Below are positions 4,801-47,014 of a stretch of 64,000 nucleotides of DNA, in pieces. Every line of letters begins with the position of its first letter. Position 1 is the first letter of the stretch. The notes below the pieces were generated by a model, which worked only from the letters and a program-made list of their open reading frames with translations, was not told the origin of the DNA and made no database searches. This stretch comes from Perkinsela sp. CCAP 1560/9 (lineage: Eukaryota > Protista > Euglenozoa: Kinetoplastea): NCBI GenBank assembly GCA_965644495.1, contig CBFFSA010000003.1, forward strand, positions 1,269,959 to 1,333,958, in the 5' to 3' direction. The position numbers and the translations under genes are program-made.

Positions 4801-5839
4801 GTTGTCACTGGGTCGGAATTGTACCGGAGTAACGATTCGATTGACTGGTGCTTTGCGAGGTGCTGTACCTCGTCGAGACGGACGTTGCCGTCGGCAACCT
4901 GCTTGAACAACTGCGTGATGGCCCCACGCTTTGCCGAATGAGTCCCGTATCCGCTGCCGAGAATTTTGCGTATTTTCGAATTCGCCTCCGTCACCGTTGC
5001 GTGTGACATTGGTTGGAGGTGTCCGAGTTTGTGTATGTTTGTTATAACGCCAGGCGATGCGTTCCCTCGCCCTCTACCACCGTATACATTGAGGGCCGAT
5101 ACGGGTTCAGACGGGACGTCTTTGTCTTCTGTCCCCACCAAATTACAATTCGCGTTGCGGATACCTCGTAAAAACGACCCCTGGTGAGCGTTGCTGTCTC
5201 CGTCCAACGGCTTGCCGCTTTCCAACACAGCAGCAATGTATGTTTTTCGCTTGACGGTAGGTGGATCCATAACATGTTCAATTGCGTGGGGGTGAGGGGA
5301 GACATCTGTCGGAACGGCTCTGCCGCTCCCTCGGCCATGAGGGATTTGATGTAAAAACGCAGGGGATTGGTTTGCATGCCGGCCATGCTTAGTATCGCCG
5401 CTACGCTCCGCGCGTAAGTCAACTTTCCCTGAATTTTGATCGGCATTTCGGCGATGAAAGTCACGGCGTGCAACGGAGTTATTGGAATTCCCTTCCAATT
5501 GCAGAATGTTGTTAGACGCTCCCACAGCTTGGCTCTGGCCTGCCACGTGGAGACGCTCCACATCTCCGACATTGCGTCCAACGCAGTGCGTACTTCTGGT
5601 GTGAGCACATTCACTCCCATTAGCAACTTCATGAGGCTTAGTCGCGCTGGCGCGGTCTGTTGAAGACTCAAAGTACCGTTGTACAATTGTCCTGAGGTGA
5701 TCAATCTCCCTTTTAAGTTCACCGAGTTGGGTGTATACTCCATGCTGCTTATTTTCCTTCTCTTCATCACTTGCGTAGAAATTACTGTCATTCGACATTT
5801 GAATTTTATGACAGTACTGGCCGTTAGGGTGGGGTCGTT
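4749..5839 (-). pseudogene. Tyrosine recombinase (frameshift near 5045)
   Basis: AASRW (R), KTKT (K), THSAKRG, AKH, LLRY; split across ORFs 5042-5791 and 4749-5912. Confidence 0.85.
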
Positions 5840-5891
5840 TCAAAGACTCTTGCTGCTTGAAGCAGGGCCAGCCACCCGCGCCCGAAAACCC
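5817..5891 (-). promoter_or_regulatory. Putative -1 ribosomal frameshift signal
   Basis: G GGT TTT in the gag frame (5885-5891), 7-nt spacer, pseudoknot GGGTGG/CCACCC plus CTGGCC/GGCCAG. Confidence 0.75.
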
Positions 5892-6335
5892 TGCTGGAAA
5901 CGTTTTGGGCAATTACACCACAAGTGCTCTGGGGATTGACACCCGAAACATAATAACTTGCGTTGAGAAAAATTAGACGGACGAGGCTGGGCTTGACCAT
6001 AACGTGCGGTAGAATAAACGTGAGCAGATGAATGAGCGACTGCGCGGGAGTGTTGCTTTTGACGTTCCACCAATTGTTCATTTACGTGGTGGTAAAACTT
6101 ATCATTGGGCCGCACTTCTTTTTGCAGCTTCTGGTGAACCAATCCGACATCTACCTGGCGAGCCTGCCAATACGCGTCGCGAACAGTCTAAATGATTGCA
6201 CGTCCCATTTCCAGATAGGGTCCTTCGTTCCAATTAGGGATCATCCGGGCAAAAAGAATCCACTTGCAGAAAACATTATAAAAAAAATCGCTCCTGGCGT
6301 ATGACGAATCCTCGATCCTGGTAATACTTGTTTCA
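5840..6335 (-). pseudogene. Gag C-terminal part with zinc knuckle
   Basis: CFGCQSPEHLWCNC; homologous to 46107-46991. Confidence 0.85.
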
Positions 6336-6339
6336 GTTT

Positions 6340-9709: not shown

Positions 9710-11266
9710 CAGGGGGGGTCATGAAAAGAGTGGGGGGTCTAAAATTTGTACCGTGCGAGCTTTTGACCTAATTCCTTCGGTATTCAACAGATCTCGAAAT
9801 TTTAAGACTACGTGAGTTATAACTACTTAGGCATATAAGGTTGAGTGATAATGGTGAGTCGGCAAAAAACAGGTTTTTTTGTTTTTTGCATATTTGGATT
9901 TTCTCATTATTTCATTATTGATCCCCCGTTTTTTTCTCGAAGAAGTCTGATTCGGGACGGGAAGCTCGTCAAAGTATTATTATACGATGCTTTCATATCA
10001 GATAATAGATAATCAAGCGCTTTTGGAATTGTAGCTTGTAGTTCCTTACGGTTTGTGGGGAGGAGAGTAAATTTTATGTGGTGATCCATCATGCTCCACA
10101 AATTTTCAATTAAATTTAAATCCGGCGACTTGGCAGGCCAATCAGGAATGCTGATACCCATGTCTCTACCGACGCGGCGAGCGTGATTATGGCCCGGAGC
10201 GTTATCCATGATCACTGTTGCCGCTGGTTTACGCTTTAACCAGTTGTAGAAACCATTTCGTTTTGGCATGGCAGAGAGAAACGTTTCGTTAGTGACCGTC
10301 TCATTCTCCGCAAACTCATGAAAACAGTGAACCTTGGGAACCCCCCATTCAAGGCTCACCGCCATCCAAATATGAACCCCCTTTCCTCCGAAATATTTCT
10401 CAACATCTTTTGGTACCTCAAGGGGTTCATCTGACCTTTTGCAAATGTACCAAATATTGCGTGAGTGGTACCCGCATTTAAAAATCTTTTCATCCGTCCA
10501 CAGAATACGGGCGTATTGAAAAGGGGTGAACCTCTCCAAACGATTTGCCAACTCCAGGCGGTCGAATTTGTGCTGAGGCGTGAGATGAGGAACTTTCCTC
10601 ATTTTTCTGCTTATGTACCCGCTCCTTTTCAGTGATCTTTTCACAGACGAAAGAGAGAATGGGTACTTGGTTTGATCGATCTGGCGGTGAACCCACCTCC
10701 AAGATGGACAGCCAATGGGACTATGTTGATTTTCTTCATCTACAATAGATTCTAACATTATTCGAAACTCTTCATTATCAATCGCATTCTTACGTATGTA
10801 TTTTATACGTTCTAACCCTCCTGTCTCCCGGTGGCGTTTAACCCATCGAGAGACAGTTGCTTCACTGCATTTCGTAAGAGCAGCAGTGTCTGTAATCGAA
10901 CGTCCCTGGTTTTGTACCTCATGGACGCAAATTACACGTGTTTCATAAGTGATTTGTTGCGTCGAGAGGGTGCGCCTCTGGCGGCGAAGTGTTTTCGGCA
11001 TAAAAGATGTGTTAGAAAGAGTTAAGTGGTATTTTATTCATAGATTAATGGGCTAAAATGATAAAAAATGATAAAAATCCGATTTTTTGCAGAATTTTCA
11101 GGTAAAAAATTCAGTAAAATTTTATCATGACGTCATATCAGCTTCAGGGGCGGCAACAATGGTGCCAGTAGTCTTAAAATTTCGAGATCTGTTGAATGCC
11201 GAAGGAAGGTCAAAAGCTCGCACGGTACAAATTTTAGACCCCCCACCTTTTTCGTGACCCCCCCTG
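9710..11266 (-). mobile_element. Tc1-like DNA transposon nested in the foldback arm
   Basis: ~100-bp TIRs starting CAGGGGGGGTCA; TA at 9708-9709 and 11267-11268. Confidence 0.92.
9907..11001 (-). CDS. Tc1/mariner transposase, apparently intact
   Basis: HTH (SEATVSRWVKR), WTDEK, IMDNAPGH, WPAKSPDLNLIENLW. Confidence 0.92.
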   Translation of the reverse strand: MPKTLRRQRRTLSTQQITYETRVICVHEVQNQGRSITDTAALTKCSEATVSRWVKRHRETGGLERIKYIRKNAIDNEEFRIMLESIVDEENQHSPIGCPSWRWVHRQIDQTKYPFSLSSVKRSLKRSGYISRKMRKVPHLTPQHKFDRLELANRLERFTPFQYARILWTDEKIFKCGYHSRNIWYICKRSDEPLEVPKDVEKYFGGKGVHIWMAVSLEWGVPKVHCFHEFAENETVTNETFLSAMPKRNGFYNWLKRKPAATVIMDNAPGHNHARRVGRDMGISIPDWPAKSPDLNLIENLWSMMDHHIKFTLLPTNRKELQATIPKALDYLLSDMKASYNNTLTSFPSRIRLLREKNGGSIMK

Positions 11267-11523
11267 TATACCTAGTACCCACGCGTACACTACTCTGATA
11301 TACTACTTCAATGCACACGACACCTGGCCACAGGGAAACACCAACAACAAAAAAGTGTCAAACATGTGAACAGTTTTTTTGCATACTGTAGTTCAAGAAA
11401 TGTCTTTAAACAACAATGCATATGCTATGCGACGTAATTACTGGTCTGTTCTACGCACTATGACATTTTATTTGTTCTTTAGACTGCTGTTTAACATTAT
11501 TTTATTCCTCCGAGAAATTCTAA

Positions 11524-14190
11524 TTGATGAGAGGACGACCGCCCGTCGCAAACATACCAATACGCATTCCGAGGCCTCCCCATCGGTCTTCCGCAATCCC
11601 TGAAAACCAAACTAATATAATTTCTTCCACCTCGCAAGGGAATGGACCCTCTTCTATGAACTCTCCTGGCAGCCGGAGCTCCCACGATGACATCCTATCT
11701 CAACATGCCAGTCATACCCCGGAGCCTGTACAAGATACGGTCGATAGCACAGTGTGTCGGAGCTCTCGGATCAAAACAGATCAACTCGATTGACAGAGTT
11801 ACCGCCGAAGAAAAGCAGAACTCGGTCAAAATCCAAAGTACTTTCAGATGCAGTGGCTCAACGCATTGTAGGGCCCAGCCAGCTCAGCGTCTCAATTCTC
11901 CAGGAATCCCCGCTGAACACTGCACTTAAGAAGGATCAGCGTTCAGGAAACGTGGAGGATCCGCTGAAGTACGGAGACCTATCGAACTTTTTCTACTATG
12001 AGTTATCCTCTTTCAAGCCAAATGGGAGTTTGCCTTCAAAGCTGTGCATTAAGGAAATGGAGTATAGACAAGGGTCGGCGTCCTTCTTGAAAGACTCCGC
12101 AAATCAAAGACGACATGCGGTGTGTCGCTCGTGTGGCATTACCCTTCACAGTAGGTATAAGCAAACATACTATACCCACAAAAATGAATCTTGCAAAGCA
12201 CTGAAGAAACAACAACAAGGAGGCGCCCATGAATCGCCAAAAACGAACCTCACGGCTCAAACTTTTCTTTCGAAAGCATTGCCATGCCTCGGAGCACAGA
12301 CGAATTTATCGACCGAGGGCCTTCTCAAGTTCGTAAGTGCATACGAAGGAGCACGCCCTGACATTTCCCCGGACCAAATTATTTCGAAGCTACCGTGCGC
12401 CAAAAAATTCCACCTCTCCGAGAAAGGCCTGGCTACCGAAATATGGGAGCTAGTCCACAAGACGGTTTCTGAAAGCGCCTTCTTTGGTATAGCTGTGGAC
12501 GGAGGGATCGACAACGTGAAGCATCAAAACATATTAGTCAGTGTTTTGTACGCAGGAGCCAATTCGTTTGTTCTGCCCCCAATCTATCACAAACGTTACA
12601 AAGCGTTTAATGGGATTGAGATGGCGAAGTCTATCGTTAGTATGCTTCGGCCTAGGTGACGGAGTTCAAAAGCTTCGTTACTTCATGGTCGATGGGTGCG
12701 GCGTGAATCACGTTGCACGACAGGCCACTGAGCGTGAACTTCGTGATATTTATGATCGAATATCTCCTGTTGGGATTGAGGATGTCACCAACGTGTGTAA
12801 TGGGATTCGCATGGCTGTACCATGCGTGAAAGAATTATCGTGCTTCGGACACATTCTCAACCTGATTGCAAGAGATACTATGGTACCGTATCAACCATTA
12901 CCCGTTATGTGTCTCAGAGATGCCTTTGCGCATATTTTCTGTTCAGGAGGAAAACCGAGTGCAAAGAAAAGGAAGTATATGGGACGTGCGATCGAAGAAA
13001 TCTTGTGCTCCGTGGACGAAGAAACCCGTGATGCTGTGCAACTGCTCTCTCAATGGTACCAAATTCTGGGGGATATCAATGTGCCCGATGAATTCCGTTC
13101 ATCTCATGTCAATGATCTTTGCAGTTTATTTTTTTTATTTCTCTTCAGACCGCAAACATCTGCCAATGCGTTCAGGAGATGCTTGGTATTCTTATGACAG
13201 GCCCCTCCTGAAAGAATCGGTAAACATTGAAACTGATGCGGAGGAATTAAGTCCAAAGCGACGTATTTCTTAACCTTCCGACCAATCGTATCCTTCATCA
13301 AAATTGCCGCTTTCTTTCCTAAAAAAATCTCGGAGGCATTTCTCCTGTGAAATCCTATGAGCTCTCTACAGCAGGAAGCCACGTAGGAAAATGAGAAATG
13401 TGCTCCTTCCCCCCTTCTCTCAATTTTCGAAGAGAAACTATCTCCATATAAAATTTACACTATAAAATATTTAGACGGATATGTTTTTATCTTGAGAGAA
13501 ATCCCTTGAATCAATAAAAACCTACATATAACAATCAACACAGAGAATCGGGGCTACCCCCACATATTTGGGGGTTAAAAAAAAATTAGCCTACGCGTCT
13601 ATGTAAGCTATTAACGGTTACGCTATCAATTTGGAACGGCCTTCGCTATCTGAGACGAAAGTATAGTCCCATTTGACTGTTGTAGTTTTATTTTGAAATC
13701 CTGTACAACCTCATCACGCTCACGACCAGAAACGTTGGCCAGGCATTTTAACACGGTCAAGAGACTTCCATCCAAGGCTCCCCCTGCTAACATTGGCAGG
13801 CATATAAAATTTTCGCTCGGGATTAGCCCGGAACTCACGTAAGTTTCAATCTTTCGTTTTCGTGCGTCCTCCATTAGTTTGGAGCCTTTCTTGCCTAAAT
13901 TTGTCTTAGACAGCTCATTTACCACTGTTATGTCGTAGTAAATTTCACCTGATGGCCAATAGATTACCAGGTCTGGTTCACTTGTGTGAAAGGAACCGTA
14001 CCCACATTTTTTTTTTGATGCTCGTTTCTCTGTTTGTCGCTGACAGATTCTCCGCACTTTAAACACTGGTAGGATGTGAACTTTGCAGCGCTCTTGAAAC
14101 TACTAAAAATGTATGTGTAGAGCCTGTGCAGTCTCTTCTTGTGACGTTACGCGGGAATGGTACCTTTGAGGAAAAGCACTTTGAACTTGA
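11524..14190 (+). pseudogene. hAT-like transposase, N-terminal half (frameshifted; CRE fragment inserted at ~13130-14065)
   Basis: BED-like CRSC...H...C, FGIAVDG, FMVDG, CFGHILNLIARD (CxxH motif). Confidence 0.75.
13140..14010 (-). mobile_element. CRE-like 3' fragments (RLE domain and 3' UTR)
   Basis: PDLVIYWPSGEIYYDITVV...RKRKIETY; similar to the C-terminus of 14510-15949. Confidence 0.75.
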
Positions 14191-14509
14191 ATTCGATCAG
14201 GAACACATTTTGTGTCATGACGACTCCGTACCTGAAACATTCAACCCACAGGCATCAACTTCACCAAACAGATGTGAAAACAACGACACGGTCTTGAACT
14301 GCGACACAATAGAGCTAATAAAAACTATCAACCCTACAACAGATTTTCCGATCCCAAGTCACGAAATATGGAATATTTCTCGATGTGATTTTTTTTTAAA
14401 CATAAACATAAACATAACCATAACCCTCTTGGTAACACAAGTTTATAATATGCGCCAATTAGACTCGGCAACTATGTTAATCTCTGATCCTCAGTGTTGA
14501 CGATGGTGG

Positions 14510-15949
14510 CTAAAATAGTTTCTCTTCCTCAGAGGAGTCAGAGGCCAGGAACTGCTTTAATTGGGAGTAAACCACGGCGCCGTTTAGTTCTTGTAGCTGC
14601 AGTGCAAAGTCCTCAACAATCGTTTCGCGATCTGCTCCGCATACATCCGCGAGAGAGTTAAGAAGAGCCTTAGTGTTTGCATGCATGGCCCCGCCGGAGA
14701 GCATGGGGAGGCACACAAATTGGTTCGATGGTATCATAGCGGTCGTCACGTATGTTTTTATCTTGCGGCCTATAGCGTCTTTCATGAGTTGGGTTGCTTT
14801 TCTGCCTATGTTCGAGGGTGACAGCTCGTGAACTATGGTGAAATCATAATAGATATCTCCCGATGCCCAGTGGATCACAATGTCTGGTCCGGATCGAATT
14901 AAAGCTCCGGTACCGCATGTTCGTTGGTGTTCGTGGCGCCTTTCTGTTTGTATCGACTCGGCGCATACCGTGCATTTGTAGGACGAAAAATTGCGGGGTT
15001 CTAATTCGCACGGGATTCCTCTTTTGAGGCATAGTTCGTAGATTCGTCTTACCATTCTATGATGCTTCATTGTTGCGTTATTTCCATGGCATTTAACACA
15101 TCCAGAAATATGGGTGATGGCTTCGTCTGACTTGAGAGTTATATGGCAGCCAGGGCATTGCACATGAGCGGGAAGACGAGGATGGGCCAAGCCAAGGCGG
15201 GGCATCACTGCTAGCGTAAAGTATCGTGAGGATACCATTCTTGTTCTAGAGGTTAGCCAGGAGAAGTTTCCTTTTTCGCAGGTCGCTTGTAAGATTGGTC
15301 CCGCTATTTTATCTTGCATCAGGGTTTCTTTTACCTTGGAATGAAACAAGTCTTCCGTTACGATTTCATCATCTGGAGGGTTTTCCGGGCTGTATTCGTG
15401 GCGTGGCAGTGGGGTCATACTCATTGCAAGAGCTGAAGGGGTTTTTATTCGCTCTAGAGCAAAAAAGTGTGACTTTTTATATGATGCCTCTGCGATGCCG
15501 GATGCTGGAGATAGTCCTAGTCCTCCTTTTCTGATGGGAAGCCTAGCCCAAGAGAGTTGAATGTCTGATAGGTTTCCAAGCCACTTGGTTAACACGCCTT
15601 CCACTCCCTTGTCAAAAGCCTCAGCGGCACCTATAGTGGACTCCGGGGGATGTACGCGCAGCTGGTATCGTAGCCGTACGTTTATGCATTTGGAGAGCAG
15701 TAGGAGTGACACATTATTAGCCCCCATTTTTTTTAACCGTCTCATTGCCGAGCTGTGTTTTTGAAGCGATTTCAGGAGCAAATCTTTTACTTTTTCGGTA
15801 TCTCCAATAAATGCATCTAGAGTCTTCGTTGCCTGCGGTTCCGTCTTAACTCCCACGCTAAAGAGGTCTTCCGATAGGTTCGTTCCGTGTTTACCGGAGA
15901 ACCATACACACTTCTCGGGCGCCAATTCAATCAATTTGTCATGCAACAA
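14510..15949 (-). pseudogene. CRE thumb / CCHC / RLE endonuclease region
   Basis: CPGC..H..C, KHHRMV, GPDIVIHW, YDFTIVH. Confidence 0.85.
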
Positions 15950-15959
15950 TCCACGTAGT

Positions 15960-16174
15960 GTCGCCCGGTGTCAAGATAACAAGACACTAAACAACTAGGG
16001 CATGATACCTCATTCTCCCGGAGGAGGCAAGTCGGGTGTCTACATGCTGCGGTTGAGCCTAGGCTCTCGCGCTGTAGATTTACTCCCCGCGTGGAACACC
16101 CGCACCGCTACCTACGCGGAAAGTGAGGAGGCCACATCTCTTCGGAGACAAACGGCCCGGACCCAACAACAACA
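15960..16174 (+). mobile_element. Short retroposon (SINE-like or 5'-truncated LINE end) with (CAA)n tail
   Basis: 17-bp TSD GCAACAATCCACGTAGT at 15943-15959 and 16175-16191. Confidence 0.8.
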
Positions 16175-16446
16175 GCAACAATCCACGTAGTCTTGTAAAA
16201 GCGCTCGTTATGAGCTGTGGGTCTTGCGCCGCAAAGTTAATATCGTCAATATATGCGTATACGCGCAGTAGTGGAAATTCTTGCACTATGGTTTCGAGCA
16301 TGGGTTGGAGGAGACTGCAGAAGAACAATGATGACAGAGGAGAGCCTTGTCTAACACCTGCTGAGCTTTTTATTGTACGTAGAAATTGCCCATCTTTTCC
16401 GTAATATAGTAGCTCTGACGGCTCGCTATATTCGGCTGCAAATATA

Positions 16447-18845
16447 CTGTGACCCCCCCCTTTAATATGGACACTTTTTCGGCTTTTGTCCATAATAAAG
16501 GGGGGGGGGGGCGATGAAAGGGGTGTGAAAAAAAATTCGGCGCCGCTTCGCGGCACCTTTTTTACTTATAATACGACAAAAAATCAAATTTGTAAAATCC
16601 ATGTCCAGGAGAGAGGGCGAGGAGAGCAGAGGAAGAGGGCGGGGGAGGAGGGCGTCAATGAGGGGTGAAGGGGCACTTCTTCATAAGGGTGAAGGGTACA
16701 TGGAGGATATACATTATTGATGTACACTATAATTAGGAATAAAAAATTAACAACAAGCAAAAAATCATGCATGCTCACATTCAGCTCTATATTCCGTGTA
16801 GCTATAAAGGTTCCATTCAGTTAAATTGTAGATGTTCTAACGTAAAAATCGAGCCCAAACTTCCTACTCATACAAAGTTTCACACAAATGAACTAAAGGT
16901 GGAAAGAAAGAACTTACGTTCACGACGGGAAAAAACAAGACCAACGTTAAGAGCTCACGTAAAAGAACCCACGTAAACTTATCACAACAAAATAACAGCC
17001 CTTTTACAATTCAAAAGTATCATCACACGCTACTGACTGATCCCACCCCTCTGTGTCCATGTCCCCGCGGTCATTGTCTGGATGAAGCATTAGTTGCCCT
17101 AAACAATCTTGAGTGTCAATTATTTCCTCATGAAGCTCTTCATTTTTTCCACGTATCAACCAGGGTGGGAGGAGTCTCCTCTGTTTCCGGCACAACAATC
17201 GGCTCATTTCGTGAAGACTCTATTTGTGGTGAAATTTCCTCACGGACTTTTATCTCAGCTTTCGCTTTTCTGGTTGGTTCACTTTCGGGATCCTTCTCGC
17301 TCCATGGATACTCTGTAGCTGGTTGCTTGATGTACCTGCGGGCGGCGTTAAGAATAGTGTTGTGATGCTTTACCCATACTCTCGAATGGGCCTCTTTTAT
17401 CCACTCCAGCACCAAATAACGAGTTACCTTACACGAAGAGTTCTGTATTCGCCATGCACTGAGCAACTCATTGTACGCCCTCTTAAATAGGCGATTGAAT
17501 ACTCGGTCGTGAATTTGGATCGTTTTCGTGCACCCGCCAGGAATTGTGTGCGGGTCACAGTTGACGGGAATATCATCAGTGCGATGCCCCGTGAAGTCGT
17601 CAGTAACGATGGCCGTTGAAGATTGTTCCAGGGTAAGTGGCAAGTATCGGTGCATCATGCGGGGATATATATCATCTCGCACCCATCCAGAAGAGCTCAC
17701 ATCAATAAATATCCCTTTCAATTTATTCGCGTAACTCGTCATTTCCGAATAAATTGTTGAGCTTTCTCTGCGCTTCGCTCCGTGCTCAAAAATTACAGTC
17801 GGGTGGAGCGGGTAAACTTCGCCGGCCCCTAAATCATAGACGCCCGCAAGAAATGCGGTTACTGTTTCCTTTGGGTTTGTATCCACTACCTTAGGTTGCG
17901 GGCACCCTACCGGAGCAAGTGTGTACCCTTGCACCTCTCCATTGACAAACATGGCGGTTTCATCCCCGAAAAGCGCGAAACGGTAGCAACGGACTGTGTT
18001 TTGAACGTAGAGCTTTTCAGCCCAATGAGAAATTCTGAGGTTCACATCAGCGGGGGCTAAGCACTGTATTCTGCCCCACCGCCGCCACACCCAACCATAG
18101 TACCGTCTGAACTTCGCAGAAGTGTCTTCCAAAGCACTAATTGAAGTCAATCCCGTATTTTGTCGTATCATGTCGATGACGATATTTCTGGTGAAGGGAC
18201 ACCATAACGAGGAGGCTTGAACGCAGGAGCGGTGTACCCGTTCCATTGCCTCAGACTTATTGTAGCAAACTGCTTCGGGAACATTGTAGTCGCCTCCTCG
18301 AACGTTAAAAGCACGATTCCTGTGGTTGCTCCCCATGGAACGATCAATGAGTTTTTGAAAGTAGCTCATACCGTGGCTACGGATTTCATATACTCCGCTT
18401 CGCGAAATTCCGTATTTTTCTCGGATTCTTTTTACCGAGAGAGTCGATCGGCAGATTTCGCGCTTCTCGTATATATTAAGCTCAGTTCGTCCCCTTTTCT
18501 CCTTTACGTGGATATCTAAAGAAGCGTGGACATTGCGCTCATTTGTAATCAACATTGTTGGATTACCTACCTGTGGCTTTGGGGGTGTTGCCTTAATCCA
18601 AGAGGTTAAGGGTCCTTCCACGGAATTCATTAGGTTGAAAAATGACTGAAATATATGAACATGACGAACTATGTGAAAGCTGATAAAATTACCTAGCTAC
18701 AGATACCCTAAAAAACAGAAAAAAAGAGACAAAAAAAAGGGTACGTCAAAAAAAAAAATTGGCGCCGCTGCGCGGCGCACGGTCGGATTTGTCCACAATA
18801 AAGGGGGGGGATACCCCCTGTCCATATTAAAGGGGGGGGTCACAG
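16447..18845 (-). mobile_element. pogo-like DNA transposon, full length
   Basis: Same TIRs as 2188-4181; TA TSD; excision restores the CRE RT (FWRIFAAEY). Confidence 0.92.
17140..18630 (-). CDS. pogo transposase (DD30D)
   Basis: LFGDETAMF, VTDDFTGH, IPGGCTKTIQIHD. Confidence 0.9.
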   Translation of the reverse strand: MNSVEGPLTSWIKATPPKPQVGNPTMLITNERNVHASLDIHVKEKRGRTELNIYEKREICRSTLSVKRIREKYGISRSGVYEIRSHGMSYFQKLIDRSMGSNHRNRAFNVRGGDYNVPEAVCYNKSEAMERVHRSCVQASSLWCPFTRNIVIDMIRQNTGLTSISALEDTSAKFRRYYGWVWRRWGRIQCLAPADVNLRISHWAEKLYVQNTVRCYRFALFGDETAMFVNGEVQGYTLAPVGCPQPKVVDTNPKETVTAFLAGVYDLGAGEVYPLHPTVIFEHGAKRRESSTIYSEMTSYANKLKGIFIDVSSSGWVRDDIYPRMMHRYLPLTLEQSSTAIVTDDFTGHRTDDIPVNCDPHTIPGGCTKTIQIHDRVFNRLFKRAYNELLSAWRIQNSSCKVTRYLVLEWIKEAHSRVWVKHHNTILNAARRYIKQPATEYPWSEKDPESEPTRKAKAEIKVREEISPQIESSRNEPIVVPETEETPPTLVDTWKK

Positions 18846-20988
18846 TACGCCAAAAGGGTCGTAGCGATTGAAATCCGAATACTGCTTTCGCAATTTCGTC
18901 CCGTGGTGGGGAATTAAACGCGTTCCTCAAATCGATTGATAGAATACTGCATCCCTCGTGGTATAGTTCGGAGAGTTCATGGACGATTTGTTCACACCCA
19001 GCCTTAATCATAACACCGTATTGTATGGGCGCAAAGAGCGGTAACAACGTTTTTTCGTACCTCTGCAATAAGATGATTTCTGCTAGCTTAAGCATGGTTT
19101 CACCGACCGCGATTGGGCGGACTCCTCCTGAAGGTTTGGGAATAGCTACTATTCGTGCGCGCTTTAGACGGTGCATCACCTCTTTTGAAAGACCCCCGTT
19201 GATAAGATCTGTAAACATGTGGCAAAGACTCGAGCAACATATCTCATCATCGAGTAGCAAACGCATAATCGAGTCGGTTGTTCCGGTGGGACCTGGTGCA
19301 GCCCCTTTGGCCATACGTCTTCCGGCCTCTCGAATTTCGTTGGAAGTGATGCAGGCAGTTAAAGGGGCATCAGGTGGTAAGGAAAAGGTTGTTGGATGAT
19401 CGGGATGTAGCTCTTTCAGTTTCTTAATCGTGTCATCATCACTCAATTTGCGCGGCGCGACTTCCTGATCAAGGATTCTGGAAGCCTTAGAAACACACCC
19501 GTCGAGCACCATGCTGATTGCTTTCTTTATTGCGCGCGTGTCCGACACAGAGGGGTTTTAACTTTGCTCAGCGGAGAAAGTCTCGCCCGAAGGAGATAAG
19601 GCGGGACGACGGCGTCGACGTTTGGCGTTGGCTTTCCGCACCGTAGCGAGTGAGAATTTCATGGCTGATAGTATCCTGTGCCAGATTTTGTTTCGTTCCG
19701 GGTATGTGCTATCCGCGTATTCGCGAATTATGTCTCTATAAATCGCAATGACACATGGCATGAATTCTGGACTCACAGTGCGTAGAGTAGGCATAGGTTC
19801 ATAGTCTAAATCTTGTTCCGTGTGCGCACATGCGGCATTCTTAGATTTTGGGGCGGGGGAACATGATAACTTGGTCCATACTATTTGAAAGACGCGTACA
19901 TTCGCATGCGGTGGGAGGTGCCCCGAGAACGTTTCTCCCCTCTTGTGTCCATGTATGCCGGAATAGCTTAACGTTATCTAACTCCTGCTCCCACGTTTCC
20001 GCATCAGCGTTACGATTCCTTTCGAGACATTTAACTTTGGTGTGCGATCGAAACTCCAAGCGATAAGACATGTGTCACCTGGTTCGGCACCCTGAGCTTC
20101 CTCCCAAATTTGGTCCGGCGGAATGGGAAAGTTGACAGTTGGATTAACTGTGGTTAGGAAGCTCTCCACGATCTCCTCCTCACTTTGTTTTCCTTCTTGG
20201 ATTGAAAAATCGTTCAGAGCATCTCTTGGCACCTCCGTCAAAGGAGACTCGCAGTCCCTGAATTGATCTTCCGGTTGTAGCTGAATGGTGGGCGCCGGTG
20301 TGCCATTCGTCTGAGCATCAAGGTGCGAGGAATCGGCAGTTGCTTTCGCCACGGTTGAGGAACTTGTTGGTGTAGTATCGTTAAACTCCTCGTTTACTGG
20401 AGCTCTCTTCTCGCGTCGACGGAAAATATTTGTCAGCAGATCCTTCGAGAACAGTTTCGAGGGTATTGTTACCGTGGAGTTTTTCACTGAGGCTGGCGGG
20501 CTGAGCGGTGGAGGTAGGGATGGTTGTTCTCCGTGGAAACACGTTCGCCGGATTTGGTGGCTTGTAGCGGTGAAGTGGGTGGTGGGGATGATGGGGAGTG
20601 CGATCCGGTAGAGTTCTGCGAGACGTTTGAACCTGCAGTTAGGCTCTCTTTCCTCATTCTTTCCTGGCGCAGAGCTTCGTGAAATTTCCAGCGTGCTTCC
20701 TTACGTTCTTTCCTTTGCTGAAAGAGTTCTTCGTAAGAGAGGATGCGTGCAGTCGGATTCAGCGGTCGCAACACTATGTCATCGGTTGTCCTCTCCGTTT
20801 CTTCCGTTTCTTCCGCTCTAGCATCTTTGCCTGGAGATCTGACGGGGGAGCATGAGAGTGCTTTTGCGTAAGTAAGCGTTGCGTCCGGTGAAGTTTGCGA
20901 AACTATCTTTTGCATTTGATTCAGGATGGGTGGGGGACTTGCCGTCAAACGTGATGTGTGTCCTCATTCGCGATCTCCGCGACATCGA

Positions 20989-36173: not shown

Positions 36174-36288
36174 GCAATTAATAGGGGGGGAGAAGTATGA
36201 ATCGCGGCATTGCCACTATATTTTGACCCATTAGACGAACCAAGTAAGTCCATTGGGGGGGGGGGTATATGATTTTAAAACAAGCAAT
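36174..36288 (-). repeat. ~120-bp CRE 3'-terminal unit followed by poly(A)
   Basis: Also at 41369-41483, 56750-56880, 57115-57236, 62524-62635 and 63155-63276. Confidence 0.85.
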
Positions 36289-36304: not shown

Positions 36305-36978
36305 AGAAATCAACGGACCCTTTATCCTGGCCATAAACTTCGTAAAAGAAAGTAAGCAAAGAAATCAATATTTCCCATGTAGAAGATTTATCCGGCTATA
36401 CACATTTACTTTGCAATAAGTATTACAAGTATCACACGTAGCAGAAGTATCACAAAATAGAGCTCTTAGAACCTAGCAATCACTTCCTATATGTAACTTA
36501 CGAACGGGCATTATGCCCACCACGTCGCGAAATGGTTGGGGGTTGGGTGGGTGGGTACGTTTTTGATGTTTTAAAGGAGGAAATGTCACTAATATATATT
36601 TCATAATTACATTCTGTCCCTGGTATACAAATAAATAGTTTAGACCCATTTCGGGGTGGAATTTGAAGACATAGTTTAGACCCCTTTCGGGGCACCATAT
36701 ACATATCAACGCACAATATAAAGTCTCCTAAATTTCATATCGTAAACTTATAGAAATCAACGGACCCTTTATCCTGGCCATAAACTTCGTAAAAGAAAGT
36801 AAGCAAAGAAATCAATATTTCCCATGTAGAAGATTTATCCGGCTATACACATTTACTTTGCAATAAGTATTACAAGTATCACACGTAGCAGAAGTATCAC
36901 AAAATAGAGCTCTTAGAACCTAGCAATCACTTCCTATATGTAACTTACGAACGGGCATTATGCCCACCACGTCGCGAA
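36305..36978 (-). repeat. 3' split direct repeats B1-A2-B2
   Basis: B (227 bp) twice; A (196 bp) matches 41173-41368. Confidence 0.93.
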
Positions 36979-37377
36979 CCAACCCGTTCGCACGTCACTC
37001 ACGCACACCAAGTCTCCTCGCCCCCCACGTCTCCTCGCTCCCCTCACTCTCCTCGCTTCTCACACTCACCTCGCTCCCTCACTCTCCATCCCATCACTCC
37101 ACAACAACATAACGCAACTTACCCGCACTACTGCACCCTTTCACTGGTCGTACACTTATCTGCCAATAACCAAAAGAAGCTATATAGTTTTTTTTTTTTT
37201 TTTTTTTTTTTTTGACTATAACCAAAGAAAACAAAGTAACCCTCCCAATCACACAACTTCTCACCTCTCAGCTTTTTTTTTTTTTTTTTTTTGATGATTC
37301 TATATAAAGTTGAAACTAACTATTATGATGTAGAATAGATCGTTAGTGGCGGCTAACAAAGTACCCTTTATATAAGT

Positions 37378-40188
37378 TCAGTGTCTGTCTAAACGACTTA
37401 CAGGATCTGCCGGGTTGTGCTCGGAGCGGATATACTGCGCCTTGATGCAGATGCCTGCTAGCTGATTCATTTCTAAAACTTTCTTTAACTCCTTTGCTAT
37501 ATTGTCGGAGTTAGCAACCCGTCGGTTAATAGCGCCTTGGCAGGATGTGTTATCAATGAACAGATCTAAACACGTTCCTTTTTGAAAATGATGTCCGAAA
37601 TCCCTCATGGCATTAGTAACGGCCATGGCTTCGGCATGGTTAACTTCATAGCAAAATTCTCTTGGCCAAGAATCCCCTGTAATATGAACTTGTCCATCAT
37701 CAAGATAAAGTACCGCACCCCATCCCTTGCCAGAGGCATCCGTGTAGAGACTATGTTTATGGGGCACAACATCCGGGTGCGGTGGGGGCTCGATCGGCGT
37801 ATTCGTCAAAAGTTCATCTCTCCAAGATGCCAAAATGCACCGCGTATGTTTCGGGAGGGGAACCGGGTCATCCGCGAGGTGTAAATTACGATTGAGTAGA
37901 TTGATTCTGCGTCTCGCTATCTTGAGTGTGAAGTGAAAACGAGGAATAACGTAACCGAGTACCGCTGAAGCGTAGAGGAGACGCCCCACCGCCGTCTCCA
38001 ATTGGGCATATGTGATTGTACCGAATCGATCGCGCTTCAGTTTGGCTAGTACACGGGGTCCCAGGCTAACCCTATGTACTGTGTGATCGTATTTAACTCC
38101 ATTAAATACGTACTGTGTCTCCGGGGGAGATCCGTCCTCCTTGAATAGGCCATTGGCTGCCTTGCATCGCGAATCAATTTTTTGCGCATATTCGCTGGCC
38201 TGTTGTTCATTCGCTGCATATCGAACCCCGTCGACGTACACGTCGATGCCACTGTCGGCAAACGTAGCTCCCGGCTTACATACCGCCGGATCTCCGGCCA
38301 AAACAGAAGTTATAACCTGCATGATTTCCGGGGCACATCGATGCCCCATAGGCATAACCTTCATTTGGTAGAGATTACCATCTCCACCGCGAAATCGAAA
38401 CTTCGCACGGACCTTCGTTGGAACCGGGACTTGGTAAAATCCACACTTCAGGTCCCTTTTAACCCCGACCTCCGCTTCAGCGCGATGCAAATATTTGGAA
38501 GGGTGGAGGAGAGGTACGGCTGGTTTGTAGTCCTTAAGGCGCTCATTATCGTCGAGCGTCCATGAAATAAATCTGCGTCGGAATTGTCCTCCCTCATCCG
38601 CTTCGACTACTGTGAAGGGAACGAGATACTGTATGGTCGGCGCCTTTTGCGCCGCGTCCTGGGTTACTCTTTCAATTACATTGGCCTCTAATAATTCAGT
38701 AATATCAGAGGGTAGCAGGTTTCCCTTGATTGGGGGCTGCGGTTGAGGGGAAATTCGAGTGCAAAATAATTTGTTGAGAACCTCGTTAAAACGATACCGC
38801 GTGTCGTGACGCATCCATTCTTTGAGTTTATCTAGGTCCATACTTGGAATTCCGCTCTTCACATGCAAAGGGTAATGCATATCTTTAGCCTGTGCCAAAC
38901 GAGACGACCGTCGAGCACATAGTATACTATATCGTTTAACATGGGGCACCTGTTCGAGGCATTTATCAACCTCCTTTTGGGTTATTGGAGCGGTAGGAGG
39001 GCCGAAGCTCGATGCGTACCAAGGGCCTTCGCCGTCGTGACCAAGTCGGCGTTGTACCGTAAGAGGGAGTTTATGCTCTGATGCTTTGCGATAGTTTGCA
39101 CGTCGGCGATTGTTGCCTTTCCTAGAGCGATTTCCCGGAATAGGTGTGTCACTGCCCCCCTTTTTATTGAGTGAGTCCCGAAATTCTGTCCCAGAATCTT
39201 GCGTATTGCACGGTCCATCTCGTGTACTGTTGTGATACTTATCCTTTGACCTGCTATCATACTGCCCACGTATCGAGCTATTTCCGGAGTTCCTTGACCG
39301 CGTATTGTCGTACACATGGAGATTCGATATGGGTTTAGCCTTGTCGTCTTCGTGTTCCTTCCCCAGTACACGATTACTTCCTCTGGATTGTACTTGACGA
39401 ATCGGTCCTTGGTGAGGTCCGCGACTTCGGTCCACCGAGCGACAGCCTTCCAACATATGAGCACCGCCATTGAGTCTCTTGGTCTCAGGACGGATCTGAG
39501 CTTTTGAATGTGCCATGGTGTTGCTGGTGTCATTTGTCTGGTTGGCTCTAATGCTCCCCTGGCCTGTAGTGCTTTTGCGTAAAGCTGTAGTGGACCCGTG
39601 GGCATCTTGGCGAGATTGAAAATTGCTTGAAGACTCCTGGTGTATGCGAGAATGGTCGCCGGTGCGAGGTGCAATTGATTTAGAAATACGACGGCGTTGA
39701 TTGGTTCGATGCCGAGCATTTCTGCCGTGCAAAAGCTGGCGAGGCGGTCCCACAGACGACTGCGTGTCATCCACGTGGTGGTCGTCCACATTGGTTCGAT
39801 TGCGCGCCACACCCGTTCCACTATCGCGCTTTGCTGATGTATGTTTAGCATTGTACATGTTAATTTTCGCTTTGCGAATGCTTCCTTGTGTTCTGGTTTT
39901 GGAGCGTGGGGTACGGGCTTGGGACGCTTTTGAGGTAATTGTTTTGTGAACCCCTGAGGAGGGAACGCAACACTTGCATGTGATGGAACTATAAGCTTGG
40001 ATAAAGGCGAAGAAATGCTTGATAAGTTCACCCGCCGCTTTTTCAGCGGACGGGCACGAGCGAGTCCTGGTGTATTCACCCCGCGCTTGAGCAGCGGTAG
40101 GGCACGAGCGATGTAAGGGGTGGGGGGCCTTCCCTATTGGCCCCGCTTCGCACCAGCGGTGCCGCCCGTCACCCCCAAACGAAAACCC
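37378..40188 (-). CDS. Pol (linker overlapping YR, then RT and RNase H), probably reached by -1 frameshift
   Basis: KRDLKCGFYQ, MPMGH, YVDG, YTDASGKGWG, NPADPVSR; frame is open from the slippery site. Confidence 0.9.
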   Translation of the reverse strand, partial: GFSFGGDGRHRWCEAGPIGKAPHPLHRSCPTAAQARGEYTRTRSCPSAEKAAGELIKHFFAFIQAYSSITCKCCVPSSGVHKTITSKASQARTPRSKTRTQGSIRKAKINMYNAKHTSAKRDSGTGVARNRTNVDDHHVDDTQSSVGPPRQLLHGRNARHRTNQRRRISKSIAPRTGDHSRIHQESSSNFQSRQDAHGSTTALRKSTTGQGSIRANQTNDTSNTMAHSKAQIRPETKRLNGGAHMLEGCRSVDRSRGPHQGPIRQVQSRGSNRVLGKEHEDDKAKPISNLHVYDNTRSRNSGNSSIRGQYDSRSKDKYHNSTRDGPCNTQDSGTEFRDSLNKKGGSDTPIPGNRSRKGNNRRRANYRKASEHKLPLTVQRRLGHDGEGPWYASSFGPPTAPITQKEVDKCLEQVPHVKRYSILCARRSSRLAQAKDMHYPLHVKSGIPSMDLDKLKEWMRHDTRYRFNEVLNKLFCTRISPQPQPPIKGNLLPSDITELLEANVIERVTQDAAQKAPTIQYLVPFTVVEADEGGQFRRRFISWTLDDNERLKDYKPAVPLLHPSKYLHRAEAEVGVKRDLKCGFYQVPVPTKVRAKFRFRGGDGNLYQMKVMPMGHRCAPEIMQVITSVLAGDPAVCKPGATFADSGIDVYVDGVRYAANEQQASEYAQKIDSRCKAANGLFKEDGSPPETQYVFNGVKYDHTVHRVSLGPRVLAKLKRDRFGTITYAQLETAVGRLLYASAVLGYVIPRFHFTLKIARRRINLLNRNLHLADDPVPLPKHTRCILASWRDELLTNTPIEPPPHPDVVPHKHSLYTDASGKGWGAVLYLDDGQVHITGDSWPREFCYEVNHAEAMAVTNAMRDFGHHFQKGTCLDLFIDNTSCQGAINRRVANSDNIAKELKKVLEMNQLAGICIKAQYIRSEHNPADPVSRLDRH
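38982..40133 (-). CDS. Tyrosine recombinase (same frame as gag, after its stop; start uncertain)
   Basis: AVARW, NTKT, THSIKRG, AKH, LLRY. Confidence 0.88.
   Translation of the reverse strand, partial: GRPPTPYIARALPLLKRGVNTPGLARARPLKKRRVNLSSISSPLSKLIVPSHASVAFPPQGFTKQLPQKRPKPVPHAPKPEHKEAFAKRKLTCTMLNIHQQSAIVERVWRAIEPMWTTTTWMTRSRLWDRLASFCTAEMLGIEPINAVVFLNQLHLAPATILAYTRSLQAIFNLAKMPTGPLQLYAKALQARGALEPTRQMTPATPWHIQKLRSVLRPRDSMAVLICWKAVARWTEVADLTKDRFVKYNPEEVIVYWGRNTKTTRLNPYRISMCTTIRGQGTPEIARYVGSMIAGQRISITTVHEMDRAIRKILGQNFGTHSIKRGAVTHLFREIALGKATIADVQTIAKHQSINSLLRYNADLVTTAKALGTHRASALLPLQ
40104..40188 (-). promoter_or_regulatory. Putative -1 frameshift signal
   Basis: G GGT TTT (40182-40188), 6-nt spacer, pseudoknot GGGGTG/CACCCC plus ACGGGC/GCTCGT. 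Confidence 0.75.
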
Positions 40189-41168
40189 GAAGTGTTTGTA
40201 CGTTGTACCGGCTGATTGAGGATAGGACACTGTGCACGGAAATGACCGGGCTTATGGCACTTATAACATAGTAAACCGGGTTTAGTCATCTTAGTGGTGC
40301 GCAACTGGCGAAGTTTCTCATCTGCGACAACCTTGGAATATGCATCTTTGGTTTCGTCCTCTTTGTGCAGCTTTAACTGCAAGTTTTCAATAGGAATACC
40401 CTGGGAGGACCAGTAGTGGTTTCGAAGCTCCTCTATAGCTGTTTGGACGATCGCCAAGAAGTGTTCTTCGCGCCACATAGGGAACACACGGGCTGCATAC
40501 ACCCACTCCTGGATTATCTTAAACAGCCGCTCTCGTATCGGGGGCGAGTTGAACAACAAACCAAATTCCGGCGCGGCTCGAAGATCGCGAATGAGGTCAC
40601 GTACACGGAGTTCATCTTCGGATTCCAGCCAAGGACCCCACGTCAAAGGCTCGTAGGTGGTGAATTTCGCTGGGTCGGTGATAATCTTGGATGTGGGCGG
40701 AGTCTCGTCAGTCTTCCTACCCCCGGGCATAACCGCACGGACGCTGGTAATTTCTAACGAAAAATAGTTAATGTCCGGAAAGGGGAAATCGTAAGCCATA
40801 CCCGGCTCGTCGGCCCATTTGGCTTCCAAATTTCCTGATCCATCCCCTTTGAGAGCAATCACGCCGATAACTGTTTGACGGTGTGTTTCGCCGATATGCC
40901 CCCATACCGCCTCAACAGAAACTTCATATCCCCGCTCAAGGAGGGACTTTACTTTAGCCGCAAATTGCAGCTTAACTTCCTCTGTCATGGCTTCCGCGCC
41001 ATCGCCGCCGCGAAGCAAGGCCGCCACCTGCTCCGGGTTTAGCGTGTGTCGCTGCTCTCCGGTTTGCTGGAAGGTTGGACTGACAGGTTCATGCGGGTCA
41101 CGAGGAGGTGGACTATCCTGCCGGCCCATGGAGAGTGTTCGGCGCACGGTATTTAAAATACCTGCCAT
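40134..41168 (-). CDS. Gag-like protein with CCHC knuckle
   Basis: CYKCHKPGHFRAQC; ATG lies just after repeat A1. Confidence 0.9.
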   Translation of the reverse strand: MAGILNTVRRTLSMGRQDSPPPRDPHEPVSPTFQQTGEQRHTLNPEQVAALLRGGDGAEAMTEEVKLQFAAKVKSLLERGYEVSVEAVWGHIGETHRQTVIGVIALKGDGSGNLEAKWADEPGMAYDFPFPDINYFSLEITSVRAVMPGGRKTDETPPTSKIITDPAKFTTYEPLTWGPWLESEDELRVRDLIRDLRAAPEFGLLFNSPPIRERLFKIIQEWVYAARVFPMWREEHFLAIVQTAIEELRNHYWSSQGIPIENLQLKLHKEDETKDAYSKVVADEKLRQLRTTKMTKPGLLCYKCHKPGHFRAQCPILNQPVQRTNTSGFRLGVTGGTAGAKRGQ

Positions 41169-41475
41169 GAAAACGTTTTTGATGTTTTAAAGGAGGAAAT
41201 GTCACTAATATATATTTCATAATTACATTCTGTCCCTGGTATACAAATAAATAGTTTAGACCCATTTCGGGGTGGAATTTGAAGACATAGTTTAGACCCC
41301 TTTCGGGGCACCATATACATATCAACGCACAATATAAAGTCTCCTAAATTTCATATCGTAAACTTATATAAGGGGGGAGAAGTATGAATCGCGGCATTGC
41401 CTCTATATTTTGACCCAGTAGACGAACCAAGTAGGTCCATTGGGGGGGTATACGAGTTGAAAACAAGCAATCAAA

Positions 41476-41730
41476 TTAGCAATCTCGGAGCTGTGCGTAT
41501 ACTTCGGATCCGTTCAGCTCTTGGAGTAGCAACTTGAATGCCTGTTCGGTTTTTTGGGTATCCAACAGGCAGACATCCGTCAGTGATTTAATTAGGCCCC
41601 GTGTGCTCTTATGTAAAGACCCGCAGGACAAGACAGGAAGGCACTCAAAAGCTTCCGCCGGAATCATGCCACTATTGACGTATGTTTCATTTTTCCGCTG
41701 TATAGCTTCTCGCACGAGTTGTTTTTTGAA
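41476..41730 (-). pseudogene. CRE 3' RLE fragment
   Basis: REAIQRKNETYV...LQELNGSEVYAQL. Confidence 0.75.
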
Positions 41731-41736
41731 CACCTC

Positions 41737-42594
41737 TTGTTTTTTGAAGACCTTTGTTTTTTTGAAGACCTTTGTTTTTTTGAAGACCTTTGTTTTTTTG
41801 AAGACCTTTGTTTTTTTGAAGACCTTTGTTTTTTTGAAGACCTTTGTTTTTTTGAAGACCTTTGTTTTTTTGAAGACCTTTGTTTTTTTGAAGACCTTTG
41901 TTTTTTTGAAGACCTTTGTTTTTTTGAAGACCTTTGTTTTTTTGAAGACCTTTGTTTTTTGAAGACCTTTGTTTTTTTGAAGACCTTTGTTTTTTTGAAG
42001 ACCTTTGTTTTTTTGAAGACCTTTGTTTTTTTGAAGACCTTTGTTTTTTTGAAGACCTTTGTTTTTTTGAAGACCTTTGTTTTTTTGAAGACCTTTGTTT
42101 TTTTGAAGACCTTTGTTTTTTTGAAGACCTTTGTTTTTTTGAAGACCTTTGTTTTTTTGAAGACCTTTGTTTTTTTGAAGACCTTTGTTTTTTTGAAGAC
42201 CTTTGTTTTTTTGAAGACCTTTGTTTTTTTGAAGACCTTTGTTTTTTTGAAGACCTTTGTTTTTTTGAAGACCTTTGTTTTTTTGAAGACCTTTGTTTTT
42301 TTGAAGACCTTTGTTTTTTTGAAGACCTTTGTTTTTTTGAAGACCTTTGTTTTTTTGAAGACCTTTGTTTTTTTGAAGACCTTTGTTTTTTTGAAGACCT
42401 TTGTTTTTTTGAAGACCTTTGTTTTTTTGAAGACCTTTGTTTTTTTGAAGACCTTTGTTTTTTTGAAGACCTTTGTTTTTTTGAAGACCTTTGTGTTTTT
42501 GAAGACCCTTGTTTTTTTGAAGACCTTTGTTTTTTTGAAGACCTTTGTTTTTTTGAAGACCTTTGTTTTTTTTGAAGACCTTTGTTTTTTTTGA
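41737..42594. repeat. 18-bp tandem array (TTTTTTGAAGACCTTTGT), ~47 copies
   Basis: Near-perfect periodicity seen directly. Confidence 0.97.
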
Positions 42595-45865: not shown

Positions 45866-46991
45866 ATGACCGTGGTTGACGCTCCTTCAACGCGAGCTTT
45901 ACGGTCGTCGCGTAGTTCTTCCCCTACTGCTGAGTCGCTCGTGCCTACCGAGACGCTCACGCAGCAGGAATTAAGTCTCGTTTGTACGGTGGCCAGAGAG
46001 CGATTATTTGTGAAACCCTCGGTGCAGGTGCAGGCATCTTTCCGTCGCAAGGATGATCGTAATGGTGCTCGACAAACGTTGATGGGCAAGTTGCGCAAGG
46101 AAGGTCTTGACTTATGGGGGGTGTGGGAAGATAAGCCGTCTAAGGAGTACCCCTTTCCTCACCCGGATTTGGACTATTTTGAGATTAACATTATTGAGGA
46201 TCGCGAGGTGCCGTCATCAGTTGCTAATTCGCAAGTCCCTATTTCTGAGCCAGTGGGATCGTCTGGGGAACTGCCAAGTAGCGCCCAAGAAATGGCGGGG
46301 GAGACAGATTGAGGGACCCTCCTTGACGCTTCCGGAGGCCCCACAGGAGGGCAAGCCCAGGCTCCTTGACCCCAACGCATTGAACCCTTATGAACCGATA
46401 ACCTTTGAACCGTGGATTAATGCGTTAGACGACGACGGATTCCGTACCAGAGATTTGATTCGCGAGCTGAGAGAGGCCCCGGAATTTGGTTTGCATGGTA
46501 ACCGATTTTATTATGATCGGAGCTTCGTTAAGCAGCAGGAACGTGTGTTCAATTCGATTTTTTGCAAGTGGATTGTTTTTGCTCGGTTGATACCAAATTG
46601 GAATCAAGGGGTCTATCTCGAGATGGGACGCGGAATAATTCAAACCCTTCGGGATGCTTACTGGCGGGCGCGCCGAGTTGACGTTGATCTCGTCCACCAG
46701 AAAATGGAGAAAGATGTACGCCCAGAGGACAAATTTTATCATCATGTGAGCGATCAGTTAGTCGAACGACAAAAACTGTACGCCCGAGTCCAATCGTTTT
46801 CTACTTCAGGAACGCAAGTTTCACGCCCAAATCCAGTACCTTTTCGTCAGACCGGACCTCTTCAGCGACGAAATTTGTTGTGTTTCGGTTGCCGGTCACC
46901 AGAACATATCTGGCGCAATTGTCCCAAGCGCTTTAATCAGGATTTTCGCTCGCGGGTGGCTGGCCCTGCCGCAGGCAGCAAGAGTTTATGA
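45866..46991 (+). pseudogene. Gag (frameshift near 46300)
   Basis: Two ORFs jointly colinear with 40134-41168; CFGCRSPEHIWRNC. Confidence 0.85.
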
Positions 46992-47014
46992 CTAATCTCC
47001 ACCCAAACGGCCAG
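46940..47014 (+). promoter_or_regulatory. Putative -1 frameshift signal with TGA-CTA readthrough context
   Basis: G GAT TTT, 7-nt spacer, same pseudoknot as copy 1. Confidence 0.75.

Follow-up and report, generated by a model that had tools for sequence, protein, structure and literature searches.

How can the reverse transcriptase (RT) of a retrotransposon be translated when its reading frame has no conserved start codon and lies, over its first several hundred codons, on top of a complete second gene? This question is raised by a stretch of 64,000 nucleotides (nt) from the kinetoplastid Perkinsela sp. CCAP 1560/9 (assembly GCA_965644495.1, contig CBFFSA010000003.1, positions 1,269,959 to 1,333,958 of the forward strand; hereafter, the window), which carries one complete tyrosine recombinase (YR) retrotransposon (copy 1), a degenerate element (copy 2), and an element that is truncated or broken downstream (copy 3). 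In copy 1, the YR gene follows gag in the same frame behind a single stop, and RT and RNaseH lie in the -1 frame. Programmed -1 ribosomal frameshifting at a slippery heptamer close to the end of gag is very probably the answer and would yield a Gag-X-RT/RNaseH fusion, X being the -1 translation over YR; that slippage occurs, how efficient it is, and what becomes of the fusion protein are inferences from the sequence. An in-phase heptamer, a spacer followed by an RNA structure, and a -1 open reading frame (ORF) that overlaps gag at this point and lacks a conserved start codon are found together, and every prediction that -1 frameshifting makes at the level of sequence holds, in support of an earlier proposal for this DNA (the original prediction) that RT is made as a Gag-linker-RT/RNaseH fusion. 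Such a mechanism would explain how an RT without a conserved start codon is translated and would give a concrete, testable answer to why the YR and RT frames of YR retrotransposons overlap so extensively.

The Stop-Free -1 Frame over the YR Gene

The open -1 frame of copy 1 extends from 40251 to 37381 (950 aa counted from the first start-type codon) and spans the tail of gag and the entire YR ORF (its first ~400 codons, X) before it reaches RT and RNaseH, whose Pfam matches, RVT_1 and RT_RNaseH, occupy the final ~450 codons. For ~384 codons, two frames are open, and the third frame contains ~22 stops over the same stretch. The original prediction had the -1 frame open for ~370–400 codons across YR in copy 2 and in a reconstituted copy 3; this stands for copy 2, with 387 open codons from 5912 to 4752, and copy 3, as it stands in the sequence, has a -1 frame that is interrupted after 283 codons.

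Avoidance of stops was assessed in 18 elements from this genome and from relatives by synonymous-codon shuffling, which kept the YR protein and its codon usage, with 5,000–20,000 shuffles per element. Over YR (355–638 codons), no stop occurs in the -1 frame of any of the 18, against 5.6–21.5 expected, and zero stops were reached by no shuffle in 16 of them, with P = 5e-5 and P = 0.0014 for the remaining two (the environmental contig L065 and one copy from Diplonema papillatum, respectively). The +1 frame, in turn, has 13–37 stops over YR, which is near the shuffle expectation where this was computed. At the level of single codons, T-ending codons preceding AA, AG, or GA codons number 0 of 65–88, compared with ~16–24% elsewhere (Fisher p 1e-5 to 1e-8). 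Inside gag, the -1 frame has ~20 stops and, therefore, a general bias at codon junctions is not the cause.

The third codon positions of YR, which are the first positions of the -1 frame, vary between related copies as often as the third positions of the non-overlapping parts of gag and RT and, thus, X does not seem to be constrained as a protein but only kept free of stops. Among its ~400 residues, Arg, Ser, Gly, and Thr abound and hydrophobic ones are scarce, and conserved RT-frame sequence resumes only past the end of YR, so that X appears to be a stop-free, otherwise unconstrained linker. No ATG is conserved in the -1 frame, with the first Met lying anywhere from codon 16 to codon 266 (codon 257–266 in family C, one of at least three families in this genome). 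Since the frame is stop-free over YR, the third positions of YR are free to vary, and no ATG is conserved, the simplest reading is that ribosomes would enter the -1 frame near the end of gag and cross YR to reach RT. Stops in the -1 frame of young intact copies had been named in advance as a finding that would speak against frameshifting, and no stop over YR was encountered in the 18 elements.

The Slippery Heptamer and Its Conservation across the Genome

The sequence and the frame arithmetic agree that all three copies in the window carry, as originally proposed, a heptamer in X_XXY_YYZ phase with the upstream gag, namely, the strictly canonical G_GGT_TTT in copies 1 and 2 and G_GAT_TTT, which is non-canonical at X, in copy 3. 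Among the sequencing runs that contain this DNA, none is registered as RNA, and the DNA contigs bear out the sequence. In copy 1, the heptamer, the spacer, and the downstream structure through the 3' arm of its pairing S2 (hereafter, the cassette) fill exactly the span 40104–40188; the coordinates of the parts are collected in Table 1. A cassette pattern with 15 specified bases, consisting of the heptamer, CG, five free bases, and the start of the stem S1, has three matches in the window, against 0.06 expected, and 113 in the 21-Mb genome, against none for the reversed control; when two mismatches are allowed, the figures are 460 and 192.

The genomic survey covered 44 places (64 overlapping locus records). 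The heptamer lies in gag phase at all of them, except in a copy truncated inside the cassette (L025/L055), and 16–21 codons ahead of the gag stop, with the exceptions of that copy and of L042, in which the stop is mutated. After the gag stop, frame 0 reopens for ~361–395 codons where YR is intact, and the -1 frame of intact genomic copies is 896–978 codons long. The elements fall into at least three families, between which YR identity is only 40–47%, and a conserved YR core is common to all of them. In 14 of 14 genomic loci retrieved by similarity, the heptamer occupies the same position, and blastn identity among divergent copies starts one base upstream of it. It is, moreover, the sole in-phase slippery candidate common to all intact copies. 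In family B, to which copies 2 and 3 belong, a stop in the -1 frame lies one codon upstream of the heptamer and, therefore, the productive window comprises 17 codons, in which no other slippery heptamer occurs. Nucleotide identity across the families is not exceptional at the cassette once family B is included; between family B and families A and C, conservation of the cassette is structural and does not reside in the sequence.

Relatives in Other Genomes

Relatives were found through homology of the RT or YR protein alone and comprise the Logan/ENA contigs L065 and L066, the metagenomic elements L069, L071, L072, and L074, two copies in Diplonema papillatum (L075; GCA_030068145.1), and L068; a further one, L067, was left out as too degenerate. 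The nearest named relatives by protein homology are a EukProt transcriptome labelled PhM_4 and D. papillatum. Gag, a single stop, and YR in the same frame, with RT in the -1 frame, are found in L065, L066, L069, L071, L072, L074, and both Diplonema copies, and in these eight elements the RT frame is open from shortly upstream of the gag stop. In all of them but L074, an in-phase heptamer lies 8–17 codons ahead of that stop: GGATTTT in L065, GGATTTC in L066, and the canonical GGGAAAC in L069, L071, L072, and both Diplonema copies. That an A-type site can stand in for a U-type site at one and the same functional position points to function rather than to shared sequence ancestry. In D. papillatum, where the elements lie at 3672–7894 and 10218–14446 of L075 and G_GGA_AAC precedes the gag stop by 8 codons, the public annotation fuses them into a single hypothetical protein of 1630 aa.

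RNA Structure Downstream of the Heptamer

The spacer after the heptamer measures 6–7 nt in the copies of this genome and ~4–7 nt in the relatives. It is followed by a G-rich stem, S1, that closes a three-way junction of two hairpins, a and b, the loop of b containing the gag stop, in accordance with the earlier placement of this stop inside the structure; the arms of S1, S2, and the inner hairpin quoted for copies 2 and 3 are likewise present. S1 is invariant in this genome except for one U-G wobble, and the relatives show compensatory changes in it, with GGGGGA/TCCCCC in L065, a G5/C5 stem in L066, and an 8-bp stem in L072. Hairpin a is formed by at least five distinct complementary arm pairs across lineages, including those listed earlier, so that the proposed covariation of the inner hairpin is borne out. 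In the alignment of families A and C, 99% of cells pair, compared with 34–58% when the partners are slid, and two pairs of hairpin a show compensatory changes in which both sides have changed.

A further pairing, S2, joins the stretch just 3' of the 5' arm of S1 to a segment 4–8 nt past the 3' arm of S1. It exists in five unrelated but complementary versions (families A and B, L066, L069, and L071), and one Diplonema copy has an S2 of the classical H-type. Compared with shuffles, S2 reaches P = 0.0015 in family B and 0.001 in L066 and is borderline (0.05) in family A; combined over the five lineages tested, P = 7e-5. RNAfold alternates between S1 and S2. No Rfam match was found for the window at the gathering score or for the cassette at E ≤ 10.

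Proposed Mechanism

Translation of a single mRNA would begin at the start of gag. On G_GGU_UUU (or G_GAU_UUU), the transfer RNAs (tRNAs) in the P and A sites would re-pair one base back while the ribosome is stalled against the G-rich S1, which lies 6–7 nt downstream and closes the branched fold, and in several lineages the downstream pairing S2 would be added to this fold. Ribosomes that do not slip would terminate 16–21 codons further on, at the gag stop in hairpin b, and release Gag, whereas those that slip would read the ~400 codons of X atop YR, followed by RT and RNaseH, to produce the putative Gag-X-RT/RNaseH protein.

Several observations weigh against this mechanism, or against its generality. 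The conservation of the heptamer among the 113 pattern matches is circular, since the pattern contains the heptamer, and a number of the at least 134 genomic YR copies have no exact match to the cassette pattern nearby. Among the relatives, L074 offers only the non-canonical heptamer AACAAAC, and L068, the most distant of them (28% RT identity), has YR in the -1 frame and RT in the +1 frame relative to gag. In L068 (positions 500–1900), a C_CTT_TTT site lies in gag phase and the RT frame has 0 stops over YR, against 16.9 expected; its layout would reflect recoding arranged in another way, or else an indel in a contig from short reads and, because of it, the frame arrangement is not universal. 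As regards the RNA, S2 shows up weakly or ambiguously in family C, L065, L072, and L074, without significance against shuffles in family C or L065, and the minimum free energy (MFE) z-scores of nested folds against dinucleotide shuffles are not significant (-2.05 to +0.64), so that the structural argument rests on the comparative data. Moreover, the 5' arm of S2 abuts that of S1, which leaves no loop 1, and loop 3 measures only 4–8 nt, which makes coaxial stacking of S1 and S2 doubtful; the two stems may, therefore, form in alternation instead of together as one pseudoknot. The label of pseudoknot, given to the cassette in the original prediction, is only partly supported by the sequences: the spacer, S1, and the covarying inner hairpin stand, and a clear S2 exists in five lineages, against four in which it is unclear.

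Alternative Explanations and the Expression of YR

RT and RNaseH could instead be expressed on their own, through an internal start codon or a distinct, e.g., trans-spliced, mRNA, with the heptamer and the fold serving something else. ATGs do occur in the -1 frame downstream of the heptamer in every copy; however, their positions, from codon 16 to codon 266, are not conserved, the frame is stop-free for up to 266 codons ahead of any ATG and back to the heptamer in all lineages, and conserved RT sequence begins only past the YR stop. With independent initiation, there would be no selection for a stop-free frame upstream of the ATG, and this alternative is, therefore, improbable. A still smaller probability attaches to termination at the gag stop followed by reinitiation in the -1 frame at an overlapping ATG (ATGA): a sublineage of family B that includes copy 3 (46986–46991) has a -1 ATG overlapping TGA, with Met at -1 codon 16 (L048, L052, and L057), but the overlap is absent from families A and C, from L015, L023, L032, L035, and L040 of family B itself, from L065 and L066, and from Diplonema. 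Such reinitiation would also leave unexplained both the in-phase heptamer 16–21 codons upstream and a -1 frame that is open from the heptamer and not from the stop. Transcriptional slippage at the T run of the site, which would give mRNAs one base shorter or longer, has next to nothing in its favour beyond the four consecutive T, since the runs comprise merely 3–4 bases and relatives use GGGAAAC. Known transcriptional slippage sites need longer homopolymers (reviewed in PMC5009743), and the phase-specific X_XXY_YYZ motif with a spaced structure is a hallmark of ribosomal, not polymerase, slippage.

A different possibility, compatible with frameshifting, is that the fold acts mainly at the gag stop, through readthrough or reinitiation for YR, or as a packaging or replication element, with little frameshifting. 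Hairpin b does carry the gag stop in or at its loop in the examined families of this genome and in the majority of relatives, L066 having no clear hairpin b, and YR is in frame behind exactly one gag stop in the families of this genome, in six of the seven environmental or other-species relatives (L068 being the exception), and in Diplonema. An ATG, moreover, lies 0–2 codons past the gag stop in family C, L066, L071, L072, and L074. However, S1 starts 6–7 nt past the heptamer (~4–7 nt in relatives), which is the spacing of a frameshift stimulator, and an element centred on the stop needs no such start; such a main role seems rather unlikely, and programmed -1 frameshifting is retained as the preferred explanation of RT expression.

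In L048, L052, L057, and copy 3, the ATGA overlap could add some termination-reinitiation into the RT frame beside frameshifting. As for YR itself, its position in frame behind one stop, the nearby ATGs, and L042, in which the gag stop is mutated to a sense codon and gag and YR form a continuous frame, suggest expression by readthrough or reinitiation. The ATG follows the gag stop immediately in L072 and L074 and within two codons in family C, L066, and L071, and none lies near the stop in families A and B; the stop context in family B is often TGA-CTA, and contexts such as this are classical leaky contexts. Past the gag stop, ~100 poorly conserved codons remain open in frame 0.

More tentatively, the ~85–110-nt RNA element at the end of gag might act as a three-way translational switch across euglenozoan YR retroelements, a view that takes in the kinetoplastid-like, environmental, and diplonemid elements. 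Its outcomes would be termination (Gag), -1 frameshifting (Gag-X-RT/RNaseH), and readthrough or reinitiation (Gag-YR or YR), with S1 and S2 possibly being alternative conformers that set the ratios and X a pure "ribosome conduit".

Comparison with Known Systems

Frameshifting between gag and pol is textbook knowledge for retroviruses and long terminal repeat (LTR) elements. The cassette resembles their signals (G_GGA_AAC or U_UUA_AAC with a pseudoknot or stem-loop) in the in-phase heptamer shortly before the gag stop, the short spacer, the GC-rich structure, and a pol frame without a start of its own, and the expected outcome would likewise be a minor Gag-Pol fusion beside abundant Gag. However, the host here is a YR retrotransposon of the DIRS order, without protease or DDE integrase, and the 355–638 codons between the shift site and RT overprint a complete YR gene and are constrained only against stops. 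The heptamers themselves are identical to those of plant RNA viruses, GGGUUUU in Barley yellow dwarf virus (BYDV) and GGAUUUU in Pea enation mosaic virus 2 (PEMV2) and Red clover necrotic mosaic virus (RCNMV), as the original prediction had stated for plant RNA viruses in general; in PEMV2, where the zero-frame stop is also close downstream of the shift site, experiments found GGAUUUU and GGGUUUU to be interchangeable -1 sites, at 112% of wild type (PMC4737148). The downstream structure is unrelated to that of the viruses, no long-distance 3' interaction is evident, and the element is a eukaryotic retroelement and not an RNA virus.

Among YR retroelements, the elements described here share with the VIPER/TATE and Ngaro types the order gag-YR-RT/RNaseH, the lack of a methyltransferase, the CCHC box in Gag, and the A1...B1-A2-B2 split direct repeats, which have been reported for VIPER and Ngaro (PMC6681497); they match the VIPER/TATE type in gene order and repeats, set against the published description. 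The reported sizes of Gag, YR, and RT/RNaseH in Trypanosoma cruzi VIPER (492, 338, and 948 aa) imply a similarly long overlap. One review states that Viper and Ngaro usually have no overlaps. Extensive overlap of the YR and pol frames is also a feature of DIRS1-like elements (PMC3266345, PMC6681497); in DIRS1, it reportedly concerns pol and the 5' part of YR, the catalytic domain of YR being encoded at the 3' end, outside the overlap (PMC3266345), whereas here the RT frame, through its 5' extension, takes in the YR gene completely.

The literature found for YR retroelements describes this extensive overlap (PMC6681497, PMC3266345) but no translational mechanism for it, and the part of a 2016 recoding review that was searched contains no mention of DIRS or of tyrosine recombinases. 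No link between frameshifting and VIPER, TATE, DIRS, or Ngaro was found in the open literature, to which the search was confined, so that novelty is provisional; this is in line with the original prediction, to which no such description for VIPER/TATE was known. If true, no -1 frameshift signal would, as far as found, have been described earlier for the DIRS order or for any nuclear retroelement of Euglenozoa. The frame test is directly applicable to T. cruzi VIPER and Leishmania TATE, and the overlap provides an unusually clean natural case of a long frame selected only against stops, which is useful to calibrate the detection of overlapping genes.

Features of the Elements in the Window

Copy 1 combines the gene order gag-YR-RT/RNaseH with A1...B1-A2-B2 split direct repeats, as in VIPER/TATE-type elements (Table 1). 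Among its proteins, the Pfam match of the YR ORF to Phage_integrase is weak, and no methyltransferase match was found.

Table 1. Coordinates of copy 1 and of the three cassettes within the window.
Feature	Position	Strand	Basis or remark
Complete YR retrotransposon (copy 1): A1, gag, YR, RT/RNaseH, B1-A2-B2	36305..41371	-	Split direct repeats and ORFs
A1 and A2 repeats	41173-41371 and 36557-36755	-	99% identity
B1 and B2 repeats	36752-36978 and 36305-36531	-	100% identity
gag ORF, 344 aa, CCHC zinc knuckle	40134..41168	-	zf-CCHC match at aa 301-315
gag stop TAG	40136..40134	-	Loop of hairpin b
YR ORF, 383 codons and stop	38982..40133	-	Same frame as gag, behind a single stop
-1 frame, open from stop to stop	37378..40251	-	ORF translation; RVT_1 at aa 582-691, RT_RNaseH at aa 826-907
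Slippery heptamer G_GGT_TTT, copy 1	40182..40188	-	gag phase by frame arithmetic
Spacer of 6 nt, copy 1	40176..40181	-	Position between heptamer and S1
Predicted stimulatory RNA structure, copy 1	40104..40175	-	Comparative pairing
S1, copy 1	40175..40170 with 40122..40117	-	
S2, copy 1	40169..40163 with 40110..40104	-	
Hairpin a, copy 1	40162..40150	-	
Hairpin b, copy 1	40144..40124	-	Encloses the gag stop
Copy 2 cassette (family B): heptamer 5891..5885, S1, S2, hairpin a, gag stop 5842..5840	5817..5891	-	GGGTTTT
Copy 3 cassette (family B): heptamer G_GAT_TTT 46940-46946, S1, S2, hairpin a, gag stop 46989-46991	46940..47014	+	

Just outside the split repeats, copy 1 is flanked by an 81-nt direct repeat (95% identity) at 36181–36261 and 41368–41448, which could be a duplicated target sequence or reflect insertion into a repeated target. 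A tandem array with an 18-bp unit (~18 units) lies at 41668–41991, ~300 bp past the A1 repeat, and was scored by the repeat program as 12 overlapping registers of a 126-nt reference copy. An ORF of 342 aa, at 2884–3912 on the minus strand between the RT-frame parts of copy 2, has weak matches to HTH_28, CENP-B_N, and HTH_23 and may encode a pogo/Tc1-like transposase inserted into this copy.

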